64,000 nt of DNA from Bispira polyomma. Taxonomy: Eukaryota. The stretch is taken from NCBI GenBank assembly GCA_965649765.1, contig OZ287754.1, forward strand, positions 30,504,001 to 30,568,000. The letters run 5' to 3'. The first letter of the stretch is position 1; each line of letters begins with the position of its first letter. Positions 3,701 through 50,479 of the stretch are shown here, one piece after another. The position numbers and the translations under genes are program-made. The notes below the pieces were generated by a model. It saw nothing but the letters and a program-made list of their open reading frames with translations, searched no databases and was not told the DNA's origin.

Positions 3701-6700
3701 TTTCTTCATAAACTCATCACAAAAAGAAATTCAAGGATGACCAGTTTATTTCAAGTAGAATCGGCCCGAGTGGTGCCGAAGTTTTTTTTTGGGCCGATTT
3801 TACTTTGAAGACAACTGAACCACATTCCACATATACTAAAACATATATAGTGAACTAACCGAAAAACTTCCCAACAATGAACACTTTTTCCCTGTCCTTT
3901 TGGTGAAGAGCACTGAAGACGTATTTTTAATGTACTGAACAATTTGGTCTTGAACATATGGAGAAGATACTGTTTTACTTGGTGTTTTACACAGAATTTG
4001 CCCATTGTATAAAATAAATGTTCATCGGTGATGTACATCCTACTTTAGAACTACAAGTAAAATTTAGGTCTTAGTTTAATATACAACACTAAAAACTACA
4101 ATTGTTCTGTATATTCAAGCCTTACTTTGGGTACTGGTTTTGATAATGGTGCATTATACTCCTATGGTGCTCCTAGTGAACACCTCTTTATAGTAACAAT
4201 TTGGCTGGGTCCCATGAGTGTTCATAATATAGAGGTTTTACTGTTATATTTAATCCTTACTTTGGTCACAGATGTCGCCACTGTAGTCTACCTGGGAACA
4301 GTCGCAAGTGTAGGAGTCTATACCATCCACACACACACCATTTGTACAGGGAGAACTGGCACAGTCATCTACAATGTGGCCAACATTGCAAATTTTTATA
4401 ACTTGGGCAGTGTGTTATGCCATTTACAAAGAATGATAGACAGTCCGTAATACAATTTAAAAATTGTAATATAGTAGAATGTCGGTTATCTAAATGCATC
4501 TTCTATTTTACAAACATTCTATTATTGTACCAGAGTCTTGCTCTGCCAACATGTTCAGATAATAGAGGTTGTACTGTACAATCTAATGATATAGTATGAA
4601 ATTTTAAATCACTTTTTTATTAAATTGACAAGTAACTCTTGTTTTGAATAAGAAAAATAAATAGTTTTGAATTGAGAAATAATATTGGGCAATAATATTA
4701 CAAACTAAAGAAAATTTCATACAAATACTGGTAGTATAGAACAATTTACAATAGTGATAAATCATTGCTGCTATAAGAAATTTCAACATTTAAACCATTT
4801 TTATGCAACATCATCTTTTACTCAATTCAGATAAAAACATTGTTATCAGACACAACATACCACAGGGTGAATTGCCATGCAGTTGTACCAGCCAATGAAA
4901 TTGTTGAAACACTATAAAAAAAATTTGTGAATACAAAGTGCTTTGTATTTTATCCTTATCCACCATGCAGGAACTCATTATGATCCCACTATGTGAATTG
5001 GATCAGTCTTCTGTGTACATACAAAACTTGTCCGAGCACCAGTATCTATTCACAAAGTCAAACTGCCCTCATATAATGCTTGAGAGAAAAGGACATGAAG
5101 AAAGTCTAACAAGGTCTAGTGGTTAGGGAGTTAGACTGGTGATCAGAAGGTCCCGGGTTCGACTCCCTTTTATTTGGGGGATAATATCCTTGGGCAAGAT
5201 TTGTACTCGCCTAGTGTCTCGGATTAACACTTACAATTGCAGTCATGTGTCACTCGGTCCCATTCACAGTGGCAGACTCAAGATCCTTGGGTATGTTGAT
5301 AAATGGTCATCCTCAAGCCTCTCTCTTCGGGTTGGGGGAATGACAGTAATGGATACAGTTGACTGTTACAGTCAGGAAAAGATTAATTAGCTTAATAATT
5401 AGCTTAATACCATATTAAGGTAGATATATGCAGATAAATACGAATGCGAACAAATACAAACACCCCAGCTGTGAAGACATACCAGATCCTTCTTCAGTAG
5501 AACAGGTACTGGATTCGTATTCACACCTCTTGGTTCTGTCATCCCAAACCAGATTTGCTGCAGAACACTGTCTGTTGTCATAGAAGATTCCTCCTCCACA
5601 GCTAGCATACACATTACATCCTTGACAAGATTGGTAATCACCATCTGGGATGTTAGAGCAATCACTGATACATTCCCCTGAAATGTACAAATTTGTCATT
5701 ACATCTTCCATTACATAAAGATGAAAGCACACTATTCAATAAATACTAAGATAAGCCGTGGATACGCCCTTTTCCAAAAATGTAAATGCTGGTATGTAAT
5801 CACCCCTAAGTGAGGACTTAGTCGACACCACTTTTACAGCTGTTGGTAAAACTTTTTTGTCTATCCACGTAAGAATGATGTAAAAATATGCATTTGTTCT
5901 ATAATCTGATGTCGCCCCTAAAATTTCAGGCATAGTTTTAAAAAATCAAGCTAATTTTAATGATGTTAATTATTGTCATCAGTTGCATTACTTACCTACA
6001 ATCACATTGTTACAGTTATTAGTTGTACAGCAATAGTAGCAAATAGATCCAGACACATCGTGACCAGTACATTGAGACTCCTGTAAACAGAAAACCAATA
6101 GTTTACAGTAAAACAGGTACACACTTCTAGTTATATCATACCCCCAGTACATTGAGACTCCTGTAAACAGAAAACCAATAGTTTACAGTAAAACAGGTAC
6201 CATTTCTAGGTATAACACACCCCTAGTACTTTGAGACTCCTGTAAACAGAAAACCAATAGTTTACAGTAAAACAGGTATCATTTCTAGTTATAACATAAC
6301 CCAAGTCCATTGGGACTCCTGTAAACAGAAAACCAATAGTTTACAGTAAAGTAGATACCATTTCTAGTTATAACATAACCCCTGTACATTAAGAATCCTG
6401 TAAACAGAAAATCAATAGTTTACAGTAAAACAGGTACTACTTCTAGTTATCATTTACAAAAATGGCTTCAAAATGGATCTATGATTGTCTGATAATAATG
6501 GTGATATCAATGCAAGGACAACTGACCCGACTTAAGTAGAATCCTTTAAAAGAAATGGCCCAAATATGTTTCAACTTTTATTGCTACACATAGTACACAA
6601 TACTGTGACATATACATGGTTGAAAAATATCATGCACTCACAGAAAATACCAAAGGACATATAGTGAACAATATACAGACATAAGATGAACATGTGAACT

Positions 6701-36246: not shown

Positions 36247-37619
36247 TAGTGATGGAATGAGCAAGGTATGTGTATGGCAAATTGTATGTTTTCATTGGAT
36301 ATTTTCATACTGTTAATTGTTGTAATTATAGGGGTAACCAAACGATATTTGTGCAAATATAAAAATTAACAATGTTTAATTATGAGTTATATTGAGAGTA
36401 ATATTTGAAATATTTGACATGATATTCCTGTTTTTGTAATTGTAGGACCTGGCATGTCACATTCAAATGGAAATCATTAATAGAAACTTTGGTTACATTT
36501 TGAAGAAACATTGATGCCATTTTGAGAATGTCTACCTTATATGTAGTCACTGAAAAGGCCATAATTGCAAAATAATATTTCCCAACTATTACAATTTTGT
36601 TTATTTTACAAATCACAAAGAACATATGTAAACTCTCCTGTCAGTATGTACTTCAGTTCATCAATTCTTTTAAACTGCTACTATTCACCATCTGTCCTTG
36701 AATCCACCAATGAATCTTCCACATTTTTTACCTTAGTCTTCTTTGTTTGATCATGATCGATACAAATGCTTTAACATATTTTATTCCATCTTTATTTCAA
36801 ACATGAATAAGCTTAAGTTTAAACTGCAAACAAATATAAGAAAGGAAGGGCATAAATATGTATGTATATGTACTATTATAAATATATATATATATATTCA
36901 TGGACCTGGGTGTGTGACAAAGGAGTGTAATACATTTTTTTGGTCAAAATGGACATTTTACTCCTCTTATTAAAGACAGAGCAGGGCTGTAATCAAGTAC
37001 AAGTTGCCAAGTACAAGTACTTTGAGTAACTGCAAGTATAAGTACAAGTACTAGTTTCAGAACACAAGTAAAAGTACTTTTCTGTAAGTACAAGTACATT
37101 TTAATTTGCGGGTATGTGATTAGTATTGTGAGTACATGTATTAGAATATAATAGCATCACAGTGTCTTAATTCTAGTCATGTTTGGTCTTACATCATGTT
37201 ATTATTTTCATTATTTTAAGATGTCCACACAACTAGCTCCCAAAGTTTTCAATAAGATAATCCTCTTATTGTCAGCTGCTAATTATGATACCAGTTTATT
37301 TGCACAAGAGATTTTTTTGCTTGGAGCTGAACCTACAGAAATTAACGTTTACCTCTCTTAGATAATATAAACAATGTTAACTTTATGAATAGGTGATTTA
37401 TAACAAACATATAAAATTATTACAATCATTACCTTTAAATGTTTCAGCAGATTTGAAGTCACTGAAATATATATAGTGGGGATTCTTCTGGTGGGGTTAA
37501 TTGTGATTATAACTCTTAATCTTCAACTAATATTAAAGCAGTTCAAAAAGGACTGATTAAAGCAGAATATCCTTTTCATTTATACTTTTATTTCTTTTAA
37601 CTAACTGCTTAATCACATG

Positions 37620-38751
37620 TCAAGGGATATCAATAAAATAAATATTACTGTCAATAGACATGATGAAGAAATTCAAAATTTGAGGTAAGTTTTAGACCAG
37701 CAGTTACAGGATACAATCAGTGTTACAAAGAGACTTGAAAATCAGGAGAAAGAAACACTAAAACAGGATCATCTCACAGCGATGGAATTAGCTCTACTCG
37801 CAGAAAATTCCAGGCTAAAGTATTGCTTTGTTAAAATGGAGGAATACTCACGTAGGAACAACCTCTTGATTTATGGAATCCAAGAAAGACAAGGTGAAAA
37901 CTGCTTTGAAATAATACAACACTTCTTAGCGGATAAAACAGATTCAAGATGGCAACAGAAGGATTATAATATACAATTCACATAGAATAGGACAAAAAAT
38001 AGCCAGAGAATTAGACCAATCATTGTTCAGTTTGCTTCTTTGGCACAAGCAGTAGAAGTATACAAGAAACGAATGATTTTAAAAAACATTTCAGATGCCA
38101 CTGGAGAGAGGCAAGTAACTGCCCAAAACTACTTCATAACTCAAGACTTTTCCAAAGAAATTGTCAGTTGTGCATTGTATTGAAAGTGACCAAAAAGATA
38201 GATCGAAAAGCACACATGTACAGGGACAACTGATCTTCAAGAAGAAGTTGACAGTTGCTACCAGAAAAAAGAAATAGAGATTGAGAAAATTGGTATGCTT
38301 GACCTAAAGGACACTATACTTTTCCATGGTAGATTTTGCCCTTTAAGCAAGTTTGTCCCAACGAACATAATTGTGGATGGCAAACGTTATCGGTATGTCG
38401 AACAGTATTTCCAGACTCAAAAGGCAAGACACTGGGAAATGGGCTCTATCGTGCCAGATTGCTCAGGATCCAGCCAAAATGAGAACCATGGGAAACATTC
38501 TAAACAAAGAATCGTGCCCAAAGGACCTACAAGATGAAGTGATGAAAAAGGCACTTATGGCAAAGTTCCAACAGAACAAGAGTTTAAGTAGTTTTCTTAA
38601 AAATACAGGAAACAAGACTCTGATCGACTCCAACAAGTACGACTCCTATTAAGGAAATGGTTCATCTATTTATGATAGATATGCAAAACATGGGACGGGA
38701 CAAATCAAACTTGGCCTACTATTGAAAGAGGTACGTTTTAGTATAAATTAG
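37620..38751 (+). pseudogene. L1-type ORF1 (coiled coil, RRM, CTD) fused to a C-terminal NADAR/YbiA-like domain
   Basis: ORF1 motifs MEEYSRRNNLLIYGIQE, HRIG, RPIIVQF, FITQDFSKE; NADAR motifs FHGRFCPLSKF, VDGKRYRYVEQYFQTQKA, EVMKKALMAKFQQN, TGNKTLIDSNKYDSY*GNG, GQIKLGLLLKEVR; several frameshifts and stops. Confidence 0.82.
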
Positions 38752-41700
38752 CTTCTTTCCAGGATGATTGATAATTAAATAATTTAAAGTAAGTTCTGAG
38801 CACAGCAAAAGACTGTGCTTAATCTCCCCTTAACAAAGGGGACTCTAAGGCGCACCAGCACAAAAGACAGTTATCCAATTTCCAAAATCAAGGGACAGAA
38901 AAAAGGGTCAGCAACATAGAGCACGCAGGGGGATGATTGAGACTAAGGTGGATATGCTTTAGTGTACAAGTGGGTTATAAGCTTCTTTCTAAAACAGGCT
39001 AGTGAGGGGGAAGCACGAATCACATCAGGAAGACCATTCCAAACAATGGGAGCATCAAAAGCAAAGCTGTGACCAAACTGTTTAACCGACTTTTGAGTAG
39101 ATGGGTGGAACTTCGGAACAACAAGGAAATTACTACCACTCTGACTACGTCTGGTATTGTAGGAACTACTGTAAGTGGAAAGATATGGGGCAAAATACTT
39201 TGGAAACCCAGTGTGGAGAAACTTATAAACAAGTGTGGCTGTCTTAAACACTGAACGCTGTTCAACAGAGAGCCAATACAATTTTTTAAGAACAGGAGTT
39301 ATGCTAGTGTATCGACTGGTGTTTGACACAATTCTAGCTGCACTATTTTGAATGCATTGTAATTTGCGTAAATTAAACTTTGAGAGACTCCTGAAAAGTG
39401 AATTGCAGTAATCCAGTCTACTACTGACAAAAGCATTGGCCACAAGTATAGAAGCATCATAATTGAGAAACCGTCTGACACGTCTAAAGTCACGGAGTTG
39501 CATAAAACAGCTTTTGCAGACACTCTGAACGTGTTCAGAGAAAGTAAAGTCACAGTCAAACCATACACCCAGGTTCTTCACAGAATTAGCTTGACTGAAA
39601 GGGCTACCCAGGATGTCAACTGGAAACAATGCTTTCAACTTATCCCTCTGTTGTTTTGAGCCAAAGATTATGAACTCAGTCTTGTCGGAATTAAGTTTGA
39701 GTTTACCAGTTGACATCCACTCTTTCACATTGTCAAGGCACCTGTTCAACTGTTCAAAGGCAGTAGATGTGTTTTTATGGGATAGGTGCACATAAATTTG
39801 GGTATCATCTGCATAAAAATTAAACTTTATTCCTGTGTATTTGCCAATAACCAATCTGAGAGGGGTAGTGTATCATGAGAACAACAGAGGGCCCAAAACA
39901 GAACCTTGAGGAACACCAAACAAGAGTTTACAAAGATCGGACAGAGTAGAGCCAATTTTTATCGACTGATAACGATCACTTAAGTAGGAAGTGAACCATT
40001 TAAGAACAGAGCCCCTAACTCCAAACCAAGTCTGAAGACAACTGAGAAGCGTGGAATGATCAATGGTGTCAAAGGCAGCAGAGAGGTCGAGCAATACCAG
40101 GGCAGTAGGTTCCCCTCTTGACAAAGATAGGTGAACTTCATTATTTATAGACAGAAGAGCTGTCTCAGTCGAATGACCAGTTTTGTACGCAGACTGGTAT
40201 GGGTTGTCTAAGTCATGGACAAAGATGTGATCTAACAGTTGCCTAGCAACCACGCGTTCAACCAGTTTTGATATGAAACTAAGACCAGATACAGGGCGTT
40301 AATTCTTCAGGTCATCAACTGGAAGAGAAGCCTTCTTAATAAGAGGAGTAACCACAGCTATTTTAAAACCATCTGGTACATGTCTCTCCGTAAGTGAGCA
40401 GTTTACAAGCTTTGTAATGGATGGTAGTAATATTTCACTACATTCTTTAATAAGAGATGTTGGACATGGATCCAACATGCAGGATTTTGTAGGCGAGTTA
40501 CTTATTATTTTACTAACATCATCTTCAGAGACTCTGGTAAAGGCAGTAATTTCTGGGGGATCAGAAAGAGGATGAACATCAATTTTAGTTCCAGAGACAG
40601 CAAAAGTATTTCTAATTCTCTTAATTTTGTCCGAAAAAAGGAAGCAAACTTATCAGCTAGTGATTTATCAGAATCATGGGACGGGAGTACCACATTGGTA
40701 TCCATATTAAGGGTCTTGCGCAGTTCGTGCCACAGCTTCCTGGAGTTGTGACTGTTGTCAGAGATAAGTTTGCTGTAATACACCGACTTATCCTTGTTAA
40801 CAAGTACATTGCACCGAGCAATCTGGCGACGTAGTCGACTTCTATTTAATGGATTCTTGGCCCTTCGCCAAGTTCTTTCATATTGGCACCTGAGAGATTT
40901 TGCCCGTCGGTAAGAATCAGAGAGCCAATGCACAGAATCTTTCTTTGACATTCTGGATACAAGTGGTGCATGTTTATCTAGTACATCACCCAAGTCATGT
41001 ATGTATTGTTCATAAAGTTTGGCTACAGAATTGGCAGGTGACTTAATAAAGGAAGTACTCTCAAGATCAGTACGGAGGTCAGACATGTTAATACGGTGGT
41101 ACCTCCTATAATGCACTGTATTAGGAATATGGACCAACTGTGGGGGAGAGGCAATTGAGCATTTGACTAATGCATGATCCGATATGAAATCACAGACTTT
41201 GACATCCACAATAGCATCCTGATCACAAGGAGATAAAATAAGGTCCAGAATGTGACCATGCAGATGGGTAGGTTGTCTAACTGACTGTTTTAACTCGCAT
41301 GAATCAAGAAAGGTCATAAATTCATAACCATCACCAACTGGTGCATCAACATGGATGTTAAAGTCACCACAGATATGATATGAACTGTTAATGGAAGACA
41401 AGAAACCAACAAAAGACATAAATTCTTCTAAAAAATTACAAGTACATGATCCTGGGGGGCAATAGACGCAGGCAAGCAACAGTGAGCGGCCATGAAGCCC
41501 AAATGACACCACCATATTTCAAAGGACTGATAGACAGGAGAATCTTATGTGGTTTGTAGGAGGATCTGATGAAGAAACCAACACCGCCACCAATACGTGA
41601 GGGACGAGGTGTTTGAGGAAACACAAAATCTGGAGGAGTAACAGACCGTAGGAAGCTATCCGTATCAGATAGACGGACATGGGTCTCAGTAACACAAAGG

Positions 41701-41786
41701 AAGTTGAGGTCGTGCGATGTCACAATATCGGCAAGGAGTGGACCCTTGTTGCTCACGGATCTAGCATTTAACACCCCGAGCATGAC

Positions 41787-41837
41787 AGGACCAGGGTTAA
41801 GGGACACATCACTGGCGAGTAAAAGTAACAAGACAAG
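41787..41837 (-). other. 2A-like (StopGo) peptide LVLLLLLASDVSLNPG/P
   Basis: Leu-rich tract plus DxxxNPGP immediately before the APE domain; departs from canonical D(V/I)ExNPGP at the E position. Confidence 0.7.
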
Positions 41838-42024
41838 ACCTCTTCCATTAATGGTGGTAGGAAATTCACGACAAGAACAAGTGAATGAAAAATTTTTTGC
41901 AACTTTAGCCAATGAGGTTGCTGATGTATGAGGAACACTGTGATGCAACAACTCATACCTATGAGCCATAGCCACAGCAAATAGTGCTGAAAAAAGGACA
42001 ACCCGAAGCAGAAGCATGACTAGT

Positions 42025-42630
42025 GAGGTTGTAGAAAAAGAAGCCCTTAAACTGAACTCAACAGTGGGGAGCCTCAGAAAGCTTGTCCCTACAACTCACC
42101 GTACAATTCTTCGTCCCGTGGGCGATAATTGGGTATTGGGTATTATAGTTTTGTAGCTAAATTCACAACATAAAACAGCAAAACTACTCAAATTTAATGT
42201 AAAAAGGGTAGAAAAAACATAAATACCAGAGGTATATGAGGTTGTAGAAAAAGAAGAAGCCCTTAAACTGAACTCAACAGTGGGGAGCCTCAGAAAGCTT
42301 GTCCCTACAACTCACCGTACAATTCTTCGTCCCGTGGGCGATAATTGGGTATTGGGTATTATAGTTTTGTAGCTAAATTCACAACATAAAACAGCAAAAC
42401 TACTCAAATTTAATGTAAAAAGGGTAGAAAAAGCATAAATACCAACAAATAACCGTGCAGATGTAGGTCTTATTACAAAATATCATAGTAAAGTACGGCC
42501 CATTCCCGCCAAACGAAGTGGGCGATAATCGGGTATTATAGTTTTCTACCTAACTTCACAACATAAAACAGCAAAATTACTCAAATTTAATGTAAAAAGG
42601 GTAGAAAAGAAAACAAAAATAGTAACAAAT
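42025..42630. repeat. Tandem repeats of about 210 bp at the LINE 5' end (2 full copies and 1 partial)
   Basis: 42025-42228 and 42237-42444 nearly identical; partial copy at 42518-42630. Confidence 0.88.
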
Positions 42631-43156
42631 AAACGTAGAGATTTAGCCATAAACGACAATCATTTACAAAATTTTATGGTATTATTTTTTTTTCCATAGC
42701 GGTCTTCCCCCGGTACACGCTACAACCCTGTACTAACTATATGATAAAGTGAACAGTCTGAGTTAGTGTGACTTTATGACATTGAAGCTAGTGTGCTTAT
42801 GTAGTGAGGGTAACAAACTGTGTTATTGTTATTTGAGACAAAGTAGATTCAATTGTGTAGAGTTAAAATACTGCACAGGACATATAATACACATACAAAC
42901 TCTTGCTTTTGGTTTTATATATATAGATATATGTACACGAGATATTAATATACGAGTACAATAAACTCAGTTTCTCTATTGGTATATAAGGGGAAAAAAC
43001 TGACAATATATATTTGCAGATTTTTAATTGGAAACAATAAATATCAGAACTTTTAGATTAATTTATTACGAGGGTTATATTACAGAAATGACTTTTTCAG
43101 TAGATGTTAAAATATAGATGGTTTAGTTCTTTTTGGTTTAGAGTCTTATGGGCCAG

Positions 43157-43623
43157 TCCCACCGGATGTACGTTAGGATATGTAAGTCACGCATGGCCTT
43201 GTAAAATATTTGATGCAAAACGTCATGCAAAACTAGAAATTAGGAATTTTCTCCATGTTGAAGGGGTCAACAAACGCTGAAATTCATGTATTAGTACGTC
43301 AAAAGCTGTTAAGTCTCGCAGGGGATGCATAAGTTCATGTCAAAGTAAGTATTTTAGCCCTGGTATGACAAGTATGAGAACGCCAGTACACTTAAAAGGA
43401 CGTCATAATGACGCACATTTACACACTGTGACGCATATCCACGTTTCAGTACGTCATACTTATTGCATCTCTTGTGTGTCGGTTTGAAATTATTAATTTT
43501 GTGCGTGTCATCTCTCACGCCAGCTTATGTATGTTTATGTATGGTATGTCAGTTCCCGCAAATAATACGCAAAACCTACGCAAATTAATTTTCAAACGAC
43601 AGCAAACGTGACGGCCGGTGGGA
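43157..43623. mobile_element. MITE in the L1 inter-ORF spacer
   Basis: Inverted ends TCCCACCGG and CCGGTGGGA flanked by direct CCAG; CpG-rich interior. Confidence 0.65.
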
Positions 43624-44353
43624 CCAGGACATAAGGTGATACACGTTGGCCAGTTATGATTAATGGTCAGTTTTCTCTGTACATATGTGATGGTCTTGTT
43701 TAAAGAGTTCGGTTCTGTCAGTTACTACCCTTCAAGAAGTAAATTTGCAGCAAATATATGTGTGTTTTTGTCTTTTATTTTAATAACTAAATGTTCCATG
43801 TTCTCATAAGCAGGTAACAATTAGTAGATAAGATGACACAGAATATTTTTATTTTATTATGGGTTAATCCCATCTAGCAAACAATTCCAAATATTTGAAT
43901 TTTTTCTTTTTTACTCATGCAGACTTTGCATTTATCCTTTTTTTATATGGTCTTCAAATATGTGGAGGGCCAAGGCAGTGCACAAAGAGGGTGGTGCTCT
44001 ATTAATAGTGTGCAGTATGTGGTGTGTATTGACACTATTCCCCTGTTAGCTTATGGTATACAGCATTTTAAAGGGTTTGTTTGGGCTCGGTCATATAAAA
44101 GGCCTAGTGTGTTTGATTAAAAATATAGGGGCTCTCCCTGCTATTAGGTGTTTTCATTTAACTAATGTTATTCTGAATGTAGGGTTCATGTTAATTAAAA
44201 CTTGTAAATTGGTGATGCTGTTTGTTGTTAAAAATACACTGTGCTGGGGTACCTCTTTTTGTGGAAGCAAGATCTTATATATGTGAGGTTATATCAGGTT
44301 AAAAAGCTATGGGTTGGGAAACATATTATTGACATATGTTCAATTTTAACAAT

Positions 44354-47300
44354 ATGGGGGATTCTCTGAAAATCTTAAGTATGAATGTCATAGGGCTGAC
44401 AGCTAGGAAAAAAAGAACTGATGTCTTTAAATGTCTAAAAAAAAAAGAAAATGTCAATTTACTGTCTAATAGATATACATATAAGTACACAAAATCATAA
44501 CATGTTTGCACAAGACTGGGGTAATGAGTGCATCATAAGCTTGGTCTCCTCTGAAAGCAGGGGCGTATCTATCTTATTGGCAATAATCTTGAATATAAAA
44601 TTTAAGTGGAAAAGGACGATGTTGGTAATTTATTAATGGTCAAACTCTGTATATCTCAAAAATATACCATTGTCATAGTAGTCTTATATGGTCCAAATAG
44701 AGATAATCCTGGGTTCTATGAGAACATTACAAAAACTTTAGTAGATAAAGAAAAACTCTAACTAATTATGTGTGGGGACTGGAATCTAGTACAGAATTTG
44801 AGTTGGACACCCATTTATATCTCAGGGAAAATAATACTAAAAAGTCCAGGAAATGCAAGTGGCTTCAGATTTAGAGGATGTATAAAGAATAAATAATGAA
44901 AAAATCAAAAAATCTACTTGGTTCAGCAGTAAAGCCCCCAGGTAAATGGCTAAATTGGATTATTTATTGATAAGCCGTGACTTTCACTTCAAACTGAAAA
45001 AACTGCTATATCACACGGGTACAGAACTGATTACCCGGACACTGAAGCTTAAATTAAACCCGGACAAGACTGAGTTTTTACTATTCGGATCAAGAGCACA
45101 GGCTGATAAATTTAAGGATTTCTTCCCAGTCAATATTTTAGGAAACATGGTTTACCCTGCAAGTGCTGTCAAGAACCTGGGGGTGTGGTTTGAATCTACA
45201 TTTTGCTTCTCCAAACAAGTTCATGAAGTTTGCAAGTATTGCTTCATCCAAATGAGGGATCTAAGAATTTGTCAGCCAGTACTGCTACTATAGTCGCAAA
45301 TGCCCTGGTTACAAGTCGTCTTGACTACTGTAATTGTCTTTATAGAAGTTTATCCAAGGCTGACATCCGTAAGTTGCAATGCATCCAAAACTCATTAGCC
45401 AGACTGGTGGCCAACCATTCCAAGTACTGTGTTACTCCGATCTTAAGAAGTCTCCACTGGAAGTTTATCCGAGGCTAACATCCGTAAGTTGCAATGCATC
45501 CAAAACTCATTAGCCAGATTGGTGGCCAACCATTCTAAGTACTGTGTTACTCCGGTCTTAAGAAGTCTCCACTGGTTACCCATTGAGTTTAGATGTATGT
45601 TCAAAACAGCGACCTTAGTCTACAAATTCTTAAATTATGGCCTTCCAGCATACTGGAATCCATACCTCACACTTTACACATGCAGTCATATTACCAGAAG
45701 GAGCAGACCGGAAAAAGTTACCTGACTGTTCCAAGATTTATCTCAGCAGTACACAAATCAAAACATCAGTTTAGCAACAGTTTTGCCCATGATGCTCCAA
45801 CACTTTGGAATGAATTACCTGCCGAAATTTGTTGTGCAACCTCACTTACATCCTTTAGAAAAAAACTTAAAACCTACTTATTCGACAAGGCTTTTCCACC
45901 ATAGCCCTAAATTCACCCAGCGTCTCCATGGTGCTGACCCATGCTTGTCCAACGGAAATGCAAATTGAATAAGGATACTGTCCTGCACCTTAGAATCCCC
46001 TAAGAAGGAGAGATTAAGCGCTATAAAAGTTACATTGGATTAGATTACTCTCCTTTGTTTTTAGAACTAGAATTGTTTGAGACATATCGTGGTAAGGGGT
46101 TCTGGATACAATATGAATAAAAATAAGAATAATAATAAGAATTCAATACTCACCTTTTATATGATAAGGAATATATTCATGTTGTCAAACAAGAAATTTA
46201 TAATACTATAGAGCAATACAGGAAGAATGAATATGTTAATGACAGGGTTGGAAAATTTTCAGTGAACGATCAACTATTTTTTGTATTGTTGAAACTAAAT
46301 ATTAGGGGTCAAACTATTGCCTATAGTTCAGCAAAATCTAAGTGTAATAAAGACAGAAAATTAAAAACTGAACAGAAAATTACAGAATTGGAAAAATACG
46401 TATAGAGTCTTGTCATACAAATAAAGAGGATACAGTAATTAAGTTACAAGGTGAATTAGAGATAGCTAAGTCAGATTTAAGAGTAATTTGGGAGCCCAAA
46501 TTAAAGGCATCAATTTTAAAATCCAAAACTCAATACTATGAAGAAGGGGAAAAACCAACAAACTTCTTTTGTAATCTGGAGAAAAGAAACTATATTAGTA
46601 AAGTCATAAATAAATTAAACGTTAATGGAAAAATCATTGTGAAACCCTCTGAAATGCTCTCAGAACAGAAGCATTATCATAAAAAAATCTAAAGTTCAAA
46701 AATTTCCAGTAGTGAGACAAGTAGTGCTAAAACATAATAATACAGTAAAATTAGATGAATTTGAAAAAAAATTGTGCAAAGGTCAAATCATTAACAATGA
46801 GGTCAGGGAAGTAATAAAAAGTATGAAGAATAATAAAACTTTCGGGTCTGATGGTTTCCCTGTGGAGTTTTACAAATAATTTTGCGAAAGACATTGGTAA
46901 CTTTTTAATAAACAGCTTTAACCAATCTTTTATAAAAGGTTAATTGTCCATCACGCAAAAACAAGGTATCATCACGTGTCTACCTAAGGGAAACAAGCCC
47001 AAGGAATTTTGAAAAACAAAAGGCCAATTTTACTCTTAAATATAGATTACAAAATCCTGTCAGTTCTACCTAAAGTAAGATTGGTTTACGATATCATGTC
47101 TGAACTTGATTTGTCACATAGAAAAGGTCTTATTTTGTTACTGGATTTTGAAAAAGTCTTCGACTCCCTAGAGTGAAAATATATAAATAAAGTTCTCAGA
47201 GTATACATTTTTGGAGAAAATTTCATAAGATGGTTTAAAACTCTCTACCTTAATTCATGCAGCTGTGTCATTAACAATAGCCACTTCTCATATTTTTTTA

Positions 47301-48990
47301 AATTAGCAAGAGGTTGTAGACAGGGTGACCCTCTTAGTCCCTACATTTTGATATTGGCCATAGAACTTCTAGCCGTGGAGATTAAATTGAATAAGGAGGT
47401 AAAAGGTATAAAATTGGGAGACAAAACTTTTAAGCTAGGGCAATATGCAGATGATTGTTTGTTTCAAGATGGGTCAGAAAACTCTCTGACAAAAAGTCTT
47501 CTAATTTTTAGTGCGTTCTACTTGTGCTCTGGCTTAAAATTAAATTATGACAAAACTATAGTATTGTGGTTCGGTATTTATAAATCCTCAACACAGACAC
47601 TGTGCAGGGATTTGGAACTTAAATGGGAAAATAGTTTTACACTACTTGGCATTGATTTCAGTGGTCACCTCGGCCTCATGATAAATCAAAATTACAACTT
47701 AAAATTCTGGTAATATAAAATACTTTGAATGGAAATAGAAAGAATAACTTGGAAATAATAATTGGAAAATAACTGTGTTGAAGTCCCTTATTATTATCCC
47801 AAATTGGTATATCTTATGAAAGTTCTGCCTACACCTACTCAGGAATTTTTTCAGAACATTGGGGAAATATTTAAAAATTTTATCTGGAATTATATAAAAT
47901 CAAGAATAGTACTCCCCCAACTTGACAAAGACATTCCAGATGGTGGTCTAAAGTTAACAAATCCTGGCTTCTTGAATTCAGACCTAAAATATCATGGATT
48001 TCAACCTTGATGAAAAATGATGGCGACTGGCAATACATATTTACAAATACTGCAACATCTAAAAAAAAGGACATTTGGCTATTAGATATTTATTCTTTAA
48101 GAAAATTTAGAGATAATGTCAATAACGCCTTTTGGAGAGATGTTTTAAACTCCTGGATTACATATAAAGGATATTTTATTGATGAATTGATATAAGAACA
48201 TATTCAATTTGGAATTCCTTTTTTTAAAGAATAGTAATATTCTGCACAGAAAAGAAGAACTCCAGTATAAGGGCATAAATTTCATTAATCATCAGTTAGA
48301 AAGGTCGGGAGATATCATGGGTTATGAGGTTTTTGTAAATACATTTGGAATATGTTTGAATTTTGTGAATTTCTATTCACTGATGCATTCAATTCCTAGA
48401 TCATGGAAGGCCATTTTATATGAACATAAATACAAAATAAAAGAAGGTCAAATTAGTCAACCAGTTCTAGAACAACTACTGGTAATGCCCAAAGTGTGCA
48501 AAGAAACATAATGGAAACTGATTGAGGCATCAGAAGTAAGGAGAAAGCACATCACCAAGTGGTCTGAATATCTCCTTGTTCAAATTACCAAAGAAGAAAT
48601 GGCAAAATATTTTGTCCTCAATTTTCAATCTACTATTGTAAGCAAGATGAGGAGTTACCAATACAAAATTTTACAGTGAATTTTAACAACAAATAAATTT
48701 CTAAATATTTGTAAAATAAAAGAAGAGAATGATATTTTTCAATAGTTGTTATTGTTATTGTTGTAGTTGTAGTTCTTCCTTTATCGGATAATGAAAATCT
48801 TGTTAATCAATTGATTAATTTAATCAAACATTATATCTATGTAATTAAATGTTGTGAAAAAAATCAATGTGTGGCTGGGGCTTTAGGTAAAATTAAGGAA
48901 ACTTATAAAATAGAACAGAACATCACAATTCAATATAATAAACTGGAAGATTTTATTATAAAAAATGGGGTCCAATAGTACAATTAATTA
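44354..48990 (+). pseudogene. L1/Tx1 ORF2 remnant (APE endonuclease, RT, C-terminal region)
   Basis: MGDSLKILSMNV, SRGVSIL, LYGPN, CGDWN, LDYLLIS, DFEKVFDSL, GCRQGDPLSP, QYADD, SGLKLNYDKT; many stops and frameshifts. Confidence 0.9.
45035..46042 (+). mobile_element. 5'-truncated L2/CR1-group LINE inserted into the L1 endonuclease
   Basis: LKLNPDKTEF...KTYLFDKAFPP, 3' GATTAAGCGCTATAAAAG; flanked by GATTAC (45029-45034, 46043-46048); internal tandem duplication of about 115 bp. Confidence 0.88.
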
Positions 48991-50479
48991 AAGATTAACC
49001 TCCCCCAAAACATTCTTATATCCCTGAAGTAGTACATAAAGCATCACCAAAATTTTCTTCTTTTTTTTTTTTTTTTGTTTGTGCATGTATAAAACAGTTT
49101 TATGTCATCCGTCAAATAATAATACTACCATAAAAGCTTACTACTTATCCCCCCTATTTGTGTATAACTTCTATAATTTTATAACTATCTACAGGGAATT
49201 GCGTTTTGTTAAAAATTGGAGAGCACCTACCTCTCACTAAAATGTGTATTTATATAAAGTAAGGTTTATATTTCAAAGATCCAAAGTTTTGTTTTTATTC
49301 TTATGTAATATACCTTAACTGTGATGTTTTGGAACATTGGCTACACATATAATAATTTACAATTTTGGTTAGTTATGGTGGTGTTTGAATGTAGATTGTA
49401 TAAACTTTATTATGTCCAATGGTGCAGCTACCGGTAGTTGTTATTTTTTTATTTTTACTTCATACTGTGTATGATTAGCTCTGTAAGACACTGATGGGGT
49501 TGGCCACCCTTGACCCTCCAGGGTTCAAAACGTACTTTGTTAAAAAAGGGTGAATAAAACTGGGGAAAAAAACAACAAACAACAAAAAACTGAGTAACTA
49601 TTTGTTGTAAGAAACTATAATCTGTAAATCCTCTGATCTATCCAAGAAAAGAATGAAAGCATCACACCTTTCCTATGTATGCTCAGGCTATAAGCTAAGT
49701 AGTAATGTCTATGTGTGAACAACGATCAAATAGTTAGATCCCTTTTTACATGTGGGTAATATGTTGTATCCATTCATTAAAGCATAGAACATTAATCAAA
49801 GTATTTAATCATTACAGCACAAGAAGTCCTGTACAATTAACAATGCAAAAAGGGTGGAGAGTAATTTCATTAAAATATTTAAAAAATTCAAAAACTAAAG
49901 TGATATAAAAACTGATAAAATAGTAAAACCATATTTGTATAGGTTTTCATGATATAATTCATCTGTATTTCCAGATTTGAAGTCAATCATTTGAAGCATA
50001 ATAATACATAAAGACATTAATAATAGTTTAATTGTGTGTACTTGGAAAGTACTTAAAAAGTAATTGAAAGTACTTCACTTTTCTGGCAAGTACAACTACA
50101 AGTACTTTTAATTTCAAACCGTCACGTACAAATACAAGTACTCCAAAACTTGTATTTAAGTACAAGTACAAAGTACAAGTCTTTGTACTCGTCCCAGGCC
50201 TGCGACAGAGTTGAGGTAGTGCCACTCTGTAACAGATGTTTTAAACAAAGTCATAGAAACATACATGCTTCTTACCATTCCACAAACAGATATACCAATA
50301 CATGGTATATTTACCTATTCACTAATATTTTTCAACTAAAGCCAACTATATGCTAATCAGTCACAAACAAGTTACTAAGATACACATCACTTACATTATT
50401 TGGGCTCACATGTTTATTAAAATGTATCCTTGATTGACGTGGATTTCCCCTTACTGAAGGAAAGTCCCCTGGGTAGAAC

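Follow-up and report, generated by a model that had tools for sequence, protein, structure and literature searches.

A YbiA-type NADAR domain fused to ORF1 in L1-clade retrotransposons of Bispira polyomma

The stretch of DNA analysed here (hereafter the window) comprises 64,000 nucleotides of Bispira polyomma contig OZ287754.1 (positions 30,504,001 to 30,568,000) and contains, between 37612 and 49600, an old, dead and 5'-truncated copy of a long interspersed element (LINE) of the L1 clade that is split by three nested insertions. Its first part (37612-38751) is a decayed open reading frame 1 (ORF1), coding for a coiled coil, an L1-type RNA-recognition motif (RRM) and a C-terminal domain (CTD), and running on from 38322 into a YbiA-type NADAR domain. 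That this anatomy is correctly read, and that the ORF1-NADAR fusion is a property of the whole family, is as good as certain; the function of the fused domain is a prediction, and is weighed below against its alternatives.

The ORF1-NADAR remnant in the window

Read in three frames between 37400 and 39000, the window yields every ORF1 and NADAR motif quoted in a preliminary description of this DNA, each in its place. The motif SRRNNLLIYGIQE lies in the frame of 37689-37982 and HRIG in frame +1 (37930-38052), RPIIVQF and ITQDF both fall within 37986-38180, and FHGRFCPLSKF begins at 38322, followed by the NADAR motifs VEQYFQTQKA, VMKKALMAKFQQN, YDSY*GNG (the asterisk being a stop) and LGLLLKEVR. 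The window ORF1 aligns to the open frame of another copy, L004 (485-489 codons), from nucleotide 307 onward only; since the alignment begins there, the window copy is without its first ~102 codons and its 5' untranslated region (UTR). The ATG at 37617, formerly taken as the start codon, is an internal methionine (...KLDHMSRD...) of a copy truncated at ~37612.

The alignment to L004 places ORF1 deletions of 2, 1, 13, 1 and 10 nt at ~37938, 38000, 38164, 38228 and 38248, and deletions within the NADAR of 2 nt (frameshifting) at ~38433 and 6 nt (in-frame) at ~38465. Overall, the window ORF1 has at least six frameshifting deletions and two in-frame stops, at 37686-37688 (TAA) and 38650-38652 (TAA); the latter takes the place of the tryptophan in YDSYWGNG, the equivalent of W133 in the active site of the Phytophthora nicotianae NADAR. 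The equivalents of E43 and K50 are intact (VEQYFQTQKA), and the equivalent of E125 reads Asp (LIDSN, for the Glu of LIECN); this Asp and the stop at the W133-equivalent are decay. With its frameshifts, stops and nested insertions the copy is dead, as first described, a fossil whose value lies only in being one further witness of its family.

The Pfam NADAR profile (PF08719; gathering cut-off 35.1 bits) matches the window piece 38371-38649 with an E-value of 3.7e-9 and 37.5 bits over profile positions 64-128, and the piece 38202-38534 at E 0.029 over profile positions 11-53; these two pieces lie in different frames and between them span the larger part of the domain, so that the NADAR remnant is genuine and no product of chance. 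Less decayed copies of the family match the same profile at E 5.5e-33, 3.9e-30 and 7.9e-24 (85-115 bits), and relatives match it with 84-106 bits. In a sequence search of the PDB, the family NADAR segment matches E. coli YbiA (2b3w) at 6.8e-14 and the Phytophthora NADAR (8bau) at 1.4e-10. The fold was modelled with AlphaFold2 on P0001, the closest intact relative (448 amino acids, 127-sequence alignment), and not on the broken window copy; the model (predicted local distance difference test, pLDDT, 89.4; predicted template-modelling score, pTM, 0.76) finds in Foldseek the same two structures, 8bau at E 1.6e-10 with a target-normalised template-modelling (TM) score of 0.73, and 2b3w at 2.5e-9 with a TM score of 0.72.

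Upstream of the NADAR, it took a family profile and a fold search to reveal homology to the L1 ORF1 protein (ORF1p), which Pfam does not show; of the two Pfam families that had been expected, PF08719 was found, whereas Transposase_22 matches neither the window ORF1 pieces nor the open L004 frame. A profile of the ORF1 core, built from 13 sequences with the NADAR removed, matches human L1 ORF1p (2ykp) at E 1.6e-10, with profile positions 66-234 on positions 3-178 of the chain, and it further matches 2ldy, a solution structure of RRM and CTD (2e-6), and 2w7a, which has only the RRM (1.7e-4). Since the profile alignment to human L1 ORF1p pairs the family RRM motifs with their counterparts there, YSRRNNLLFHGI with YVKRPNLRLIGV and RPIIVRF with RHIIVRF, the RRM assignment is confirmed. 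The P0001 model matches the human ORF1p trimer (2ykq/2yko) in Foldseek with a target-normalised TM score of 0.71 over ~210 columns; it has continuous long helices at residues 54-109 and 112-141, and the 2ykp profile alignment reaches the end of the coiled coil. The claim that an L1-type ORF1 continues in frame into a complete NADAR of the YbiA type is thus borne out by the matches to PF08719, 2b3w/8bau and 2ykp.

A family of LINEs with the ORF1-NADAR fusion

Searched against the genome (1.035 Gb, 75 contigs), the DNA of 37600-38760 matches at 26 places; copies that are 81-89% identical form the window's own small subfamily, and a second subfamily is ~68% identical in DNA. In blastn the window is collinear with seven other copies from the two subfamilies, and all of them keep the order ORF1-NADAR, spacer, L1-like ORF2. 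Two copies, L004 (C8:30841279-30842438) and L005 (C8:30774771-30775930), lie 66 kb apart, share their ORF positions and terminal sequences, and suggest a segmental duplication; in both, an ORF1-NADAR frame of 489 codons is open across the whole fusion, with an eight-residue deletion inside the NADAR, and ORF2 is broken. To all appearance, the window's subfamily is extinct.

A 147-amino-acid NADAR segment, searched in all six frames, returned at least 1374 first-look NADAR candidates in the genome, of which 150 were scored, down to E 1e-17. Many candidates have open frames of 430-513 codons, and these open frames occur as runs of near-identical copies, a sign of recently active families; here ORF2 starts (MMMTKLKICSMNVRGITDK...) ~0.9 kb past the open ORF1-NADAR frame. 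ENA ERZ22147071, a different assembly, contains intact ORF1-NADAR genes that code for 448 and 482 amino acids and have, 1.6 and 2.7 kb downstream, ORF2s of 1054 and 996 amino acids with Exo_endo_phos and RVT_1 domains. For the 1054-amino-acid ORF2, the match to human L1 ORF2p has an E-value of 1.9e-90 (residues 5-902) and that to R2 one of 3e-25; because L1 ORF2p is its best match and the window ORF2 is 38-42% identical to this 1054-amino-acid ORF2, the element belongs to the L1 clade.

An exhaustive phmmer search of 1.84 billion proteins gave 224 cluster representatives (50% identity) at E<=1e-30; among the best 150 of these 224 clusters, nearly all proteins are 400-550 amino acids long and match over both the ORF1 and the NADAR parts. 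Many LINE families, of this genome and of others, share the ORF1-NADAR fusion by descent. A protein from a 'Candidatus Thiodiazotropha' metagenome-assembled genome and a tick protein match the ORF1 part only, and a thrips protein with a NADAR domain also came up in the homologue search. The Haliotis rufescens gene model XP_048255699.1 (P0013, 4240 amino acids) has seven separate NADAR-matching stretches and P0032 (1075 amino acids) has five; either several LINE ORF1 copies were joined in these gene predictions, or the proteins genuinely have multiple NADARs. A domesticated host gene, considered as a source of the window sequence, is ruled out by copy number, collinearity with ORF2, A tails and differing flanks, all of which mark a transposable element.

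In the NADAR of P. nicotianae the active site consists of E43, K50, E125 (the YbiA hallmark), D130 and W133; at the E125 position, Glu marks the YbiA type, Asp the BC4488 type and His the phage NADARs (PMC11543638). The family motifs VEQYFQxQKA and LIECNKYDSYWGNG fit this spacing exactly. In 127 fusion proteins, most of which are separate clusters at 50% identity, the E43-equivalent is Glu without exception (127/127), the E125-equivalent is Glu in 122 and the W133-equivalent Trp in 120; the K50-equivalent is Lys in 106 and Arg in 12 (Lys or Arg in 118), and the D130-equivalent is Asp in 109 and Asn in 11. The ratio of non-synonymous to synonymous substitution rates (dN/dS, omega), a comparison that had been proposed for the NADAR part, points in the same direction: between families dN for the NADAR ranges from 0.15 to 0.44, and omega, in the pairs that allow its calculation, does not exceed 0.04-0.17. 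These omega values are upper bounds, since dS is saturated between families, and they exclude within-family copies (neutral decay). In every between-family pair that could be compared, amino-acid identity is higher in the NADAR than in the RRM-CTD part (for example 0.63 vs. 0.54, and 0.56 vs. 0.35). The NADAR is the best-conserved part of ORF1p, with its active-site residues kept, and the ORF1-NADAR design is real and under selection. The preliminary description had named a missing NADAR profile match, an absence of linkage between NADAR and ORF2 in other copies, and unconserved catalytic residues as findings that would speak against the fusion; instead, PF08719 matches, the copies are collinear, and the catalytic residues are conserved in the 127 proteins.

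In the window, the ORF2 that lies in the same orientation begins at 44354, as had been proposed (tblastn with the ORF2 of L065); its 5' part matches residues 1-233 of the intact L065 ORF2 with 38% identity (E 2e-35), and 46043-48391 match residues 231-1033 with 42% identity (E 1e-167). The spacer between ORF1 and ORF2 was correctly recognised, but it measures ~1.2 kb without the nested insertions and not 1.3 kb. The 3' ends of four copies align, all ending in ...GGGTGAATAAAACTGG(A)n with a tail of ~9-10 A, an AATAAA present and unrelated DNA beyond; because the DNA past the A tail differs among the four copies, these are dispersed insertions and not insertions into one fixed target. A single fixed insertion target is not a feature of all Tx1-group elements. 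Copies with an ORF1-NADAR upstream of an L1 ORF2, an A tail and target-site duplications had been anticipated: the gene order was found in seven copies and in ERZ22147071, and the A tail in four copies, whereas the search for a target-site duplication at the window copy gave only a weak and unconvincing 14/18 match between the flanks. Rfam, at the gathering threshold, had no match on four element loci.

The spacer of the NADAR-LINEs holds a third open frame (ORFx) of 137-235 codons in DNA of ~31% GC, which starts at a conserved ATG (GAGATGGYCCC; peptide M-A/V-P...) and whose length was not attained once in 1000 dinucleotide shuffles for each of four families. The predicted product, hydrophobic and without a Pfam match, is not conserved from one family to the next. 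In four families the distance from the ORFx stop to the ORF2 ATG is between -14 and +7 nt, and in one of them the two overlap as UAAUG; this position suggests that ORF2 translation may be coupled to ORFx by termination-reinitiation. The window retains an ORFx remnant with an ATG at ~43947, two frameshifts and a stop at 44367-44369 that overlaps the ORF2 start. At the ORFx start, a nucleotide block of ~100 nt is conserved between families with otherwise unalignable spacers; RNAalifold proposes a small candidate hairpin there (GGYCCC...GGGTGGC) with almost no covariation, and the block has no Rfam match. In the contig-1 copy L029, which belongs to the second subfamily, the start of ORFx and the 5' end of ORF2 are duplicated internally.

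The first nested insertion in the window carries an unrelated reverse transcriptase (RT) ORF on the minus strand (38943-39854), and against the L065 ORF2 it gives a weak RT match, likewise on the minus strand (39657-40580, 24% identity). Its part 38814-40566 (minus strand) is ~96% identical to insertions at L031:7778-9516 and L033:6074-6903, which adjoin or sit inside two other NADAR-LINE copies, each at a different position; the element nested at 38814-40566 evidently belongs to a young, abundant retroelement family. Matches to type-B polymerase (PF03175) are also present in the genome. The features of the window copy and of the family loci are collected in Table 1.

Table 1. Parts of the NADAR-LINE copy in the window (plain numbers) and features at other family loci (with locus name)
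Feature	Position	Strand	Evidence
ORF1 coiled-coil remnant	37612..37844	+	blastn collinearity with seven copies; nucleotide alignment to open L004 frame; AlphaFold2 model of relative P0001
L1-type RRM and CTD remnant (YSRRNNLLIYGIQE, HRIGQK, RPIIVQF, ITQDF)	37845..38321	+	family profile; Foldseek
YbiA-type NADAR remnant, up to ORF1 stop 38749-38751	38322..38751	+	Pfam PF08719; PDB matches; residue mapping per PMC11543638
Spacer piece 1	38752..38813	+	collinear with C4 and C7 copies up to 38813
Nested insertion 1, foreign DNA	38814..42728	.	collinearity gap
Spacer piece 2	42729..43150	+	blastn to C4, C7 and C8 copies
Nested insertion 2, ~485 bp, absent from other copies	43151..43635	.	collinearity gap
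Spacer piece 3, with ORFx remnant	43636..44353	+	blastn; ORF list
ORF2 5' part, apurinic-type endonuclease (MGDSLKILSMNV..., CGDWNLVQN), decayed	44354..45034	+	tblastn; ORF list
Nested insertion 3, ~1 kb, inside ORF2	45035..46042	.	collinearity gap
Remaining ORF2 (linker, RT, C-terminal part), decayed	46043..48739	+	tblastn; blastn to other copies up to 48739
3' UTR with AATAAA and short A-rich tail	48776..49603	+	blastn; element end ~49575-49603
His-type ORF1-NADAR frames	L047:535-1932; L060:1495-2892 (minus strand); L046:805-1932
ORFx	L029:5048-5500; L047:2304-2870; L057 (minus strand); L060/L061/L064 from 2723; L065:10571-10984
Conserved block at ORFx start	L032:4230-4420; L029:4990-5180; L065:10515-10705 and equivalents		alignment A4
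L029 internal duplication	L029:3723-3971 and 5048-5500; 4156-4605 and 5482-6168

The predicted role of the NADAR domain

In the proposed element design, ORF1p begins with an N-terminal tail and a long coiled coil, continues through an L1-type RRM and CTD, and closes with a YbiA-type NADAR at its C-terminus; there follow a spacer of ~1.1-1.6 kb with a further open frame, an ORF2 with apurinic-type endonuclease (APE) and RT, and finally AATAAA with a short A tail. In L1, trimers of ORF1p coat the RNA of their element. The ORF1p of the NADAR-LINEs would likewise trimerise via its coiled coil and coat the element RNA, and each trimer would equip the retrotransposition particle with three active N-glycosidase domains of the NADAR kind. 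Their likeliest job would be the hydrolysis of ADP-ribose off guanine (N2) or cytosine on the element RNA, the cDNA or the nicked target, so that the template would stay readable where nucleic acids become ADP-ribosylated. NADARs, including eukaryotic and YbiA-type enzymes, hydrolyse ADP-ribose off guanine N2 in DNA and RNA, and off cytosine (PMC11543638; PMC12945103). A corresponding writer is CARP-1, a clam enzyme that ADP-ribosylates guanine N2 in DNA and has mainly bivalve homologues (PMC11543638; PMC12945103). By itself, a de-ADP-ribosylation or counter-defence role of the LINE NADAR, as predicted from its sequence, is a tentative proposal with somewhat less than an even chance of being right; anatomy and de-ADP-ribosylation role taken together, as one blended reading, are on balance probable.

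Several points weigh against de-ADP-ribosylation. The enzymatic role of any LINE NADAR is a prediction, the window copy contributes nothing functionally, and the link from bivalves and CARP-1 to this host is circumstantial. Searches of the genome for a nucleic-acid ADP-ribosyltransferase (PF01375 and PF03496) were blank, as were those of the control genomes, and are hence uninformative. YbiA is known as an N-glycosidase of the riboflavin pathway (PMC11543638), and therefore the substrate of the LINE NADAR need not be nucleic acid. Three families of this genome whose ORF1 frames are open (L047, L060 and L046) have His at the K50-equivalent position (QYQHA, AYRHA and TYQHA), and two of the three exist as many near-identical copies. 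In the E. coli C7 NADAR the corresponding K95 is essential, yet a K95R mutant works in vitro (PMC11543638); with His at the phosphate-binding Lys, canonical activity is therefore not assured in the most recently active elements. The substrate or the activity of these His-type families may be altered.

The same points bear on the most serious rival, in which the NADAR is an active N-glycosidase with some other substrate, such as RNA ends, cap-like NAD or ADP-ribose adducts, proteins of the particle, or a small-molecule ribosylamine as in E. coli YbiA. The conserved catalytic residues would suit any hydrolytic role, the small-molecule N-glycosidase role of the YbiA family is documented (PMC11543638), the His for the phosphate-binding Lys hints at an altered substrate, and the writer that the genome searches failed to find would not be needed, uninformative as these searches are. 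Yet the nucleic-acid activities demonstrated so far for NADARs are confined to the removal of ADP-ribose from guanine or cytosine, a free metabolite would be an odd substrate for an enzyme tethered to an RNA-coating chaperone, and the presence of NADARs in RNA viruses, phages and a Gypsy lineage argues for a conflict-type role; another substrate is therefore rather unlikely. In a second rival, the NADAR would be a non-catalytic reader of ADP-ribose, NAD or a nucleotide that guides ORF1p to modified nucleic acid or to a host factor; the Lys-to-His change in the three open-frame families and the Asn at the D130-equivalent in 11 of 127 proteins agree with it, but an invariant catalytic Glu and a YbiA-hallmark Glu in 122 of 127 proteins are not expected of a mere binding module, and Lys or Arg is kept at the K50-equivalent in 118, so that a reader function is very unlikely. 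Chance juxtaposition of a host NADAR gene fragment or captured exon with a LINE ORF1 at this locus only, conceivable just from the decay of the window copy and favoured by nothing after testing, has practically no probability left and is refuted by the in-frame fusion in every family copy examined, in the ~68%-identical subfamily, in other assemblies and in families just 40-50% identical in the NADAR, always upstream of an L1-like ORF2.

Removal of ADP-ribose from the nucleic acids of the element thus continues to be the preferred, if tentative, function. An ORF1p enzyme domain whose active site is kept over hundreds of diverged lineages indicates that the element needs this chemistry to replicate. 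Because ADP-ribose removal is the only nucleic-acid chemistry known for NADARs, the family suggests that bases of RNA or DNA are ADP-ribosylated physiologically in these animals, possibly as a mechanism of genome defence. A more far-reaching version, in which some animals, notably bivalves with CARP-1-type enzymes, restrict retroelements and DNA mobile elements by guanine or cytosine ADP-ribosylation, and a radiation of L1-type LINEs survives by means of the NADAR eraser on its ORF1p, is speculative and, as it stands, distinctly improbable; if true, it would be a eukaryotic counterpart of the arms race between DarT1 and phage NADARs. The ORF1p with its point-mutable active site offers an experimental handle.

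Comparison with known systems

The assumption in the preliminary description that a NADAR on a LINE ORF1 was undescribed does not hold, since a 2025 paper in Genome Biology reports that several Tx1 LINE families of Crassostrea gigas (Repbase) have a YbiA-family NADAR in their ORF1 (PMC12477816). As in the elements described here, a YbiA-type NADAR resides on the ORF1 of an L1/Tx1-type LINE, and its function is predicted in both cases; the likeness is one of architecture and domain subfamily, and the Tx1 label rests on that report for the oyster elements. The oyster families are covered there by one sentence and a supplementary alignment, without copy numbers, residue conservation or ORF2 linkage (PMC12477816). 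The design is thus already in the literature as one passing remark, and the LINEs of the present genome are another member of that kind.

Among stand-alone enzymes, E. coli YbiA (2b3w) and the P. nicotianae NADAR (8bau) have the same fold and active-site set as the LINE NADAR, which in contrast is the C-terminal module of a retrotransposon nucleic-acid chaperone. Human and mouse L1 ORF1p (2ykp, 2yko, 2ldy, 2w7a) show the same order of coiled coil, RRM and CTD upstream of an APE-RT ORF2; the mammalian protein stops at the end of the CTD and lacks an enzyme domain, whereas the ORF1p of the NADAR-LINEs goes on into the NADAR. Unlike mammalian L1, the NADAR-LINEs have an inter-ORF spacer of ~1.1-1.6 kb with a further open frame; the spacer of human L1 measures 63 bp. 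A precedent for a hydrolytic enzyme on a LINE ORF1 is the esterase domain of CR1/L2-type elements, which belongs to another enzyme family and to another LINE clade.

The closest functional parallel comes from phage T4-type NADARs and the DarG1 NADAR antitoxins, which undo guanine ADP-ribosylation by DarT1 (PMC11543638, PMC11825919). The phage case, like the present one, concerns a mobile element that carries a NADAR, and the proposed logic, the erasure of a base modification imposed by the host, is the same. In contrast to the LINE NADAR, the phage and DarG1 enzymes belong to other subfamilies with His or Asp in the position of the YbiA-type Glu (PMC11543638); their writer DarT1 is known and their function experimentally proven, whereas both the writer and the function are hypothetical for the LINE NADAR. 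Finally, the Gypsy long terminal repeat (LTR) retrotransposons of the brown alga Ectocarpus have, as a retroelement, independently come to carry a YbiA-type NADAR, as have the LINEs described here (PMC12477816); in this other element class the domain is located at the N-terminus of Pol, whereas in the NADAR-LINEs it is carried by ORF1p.

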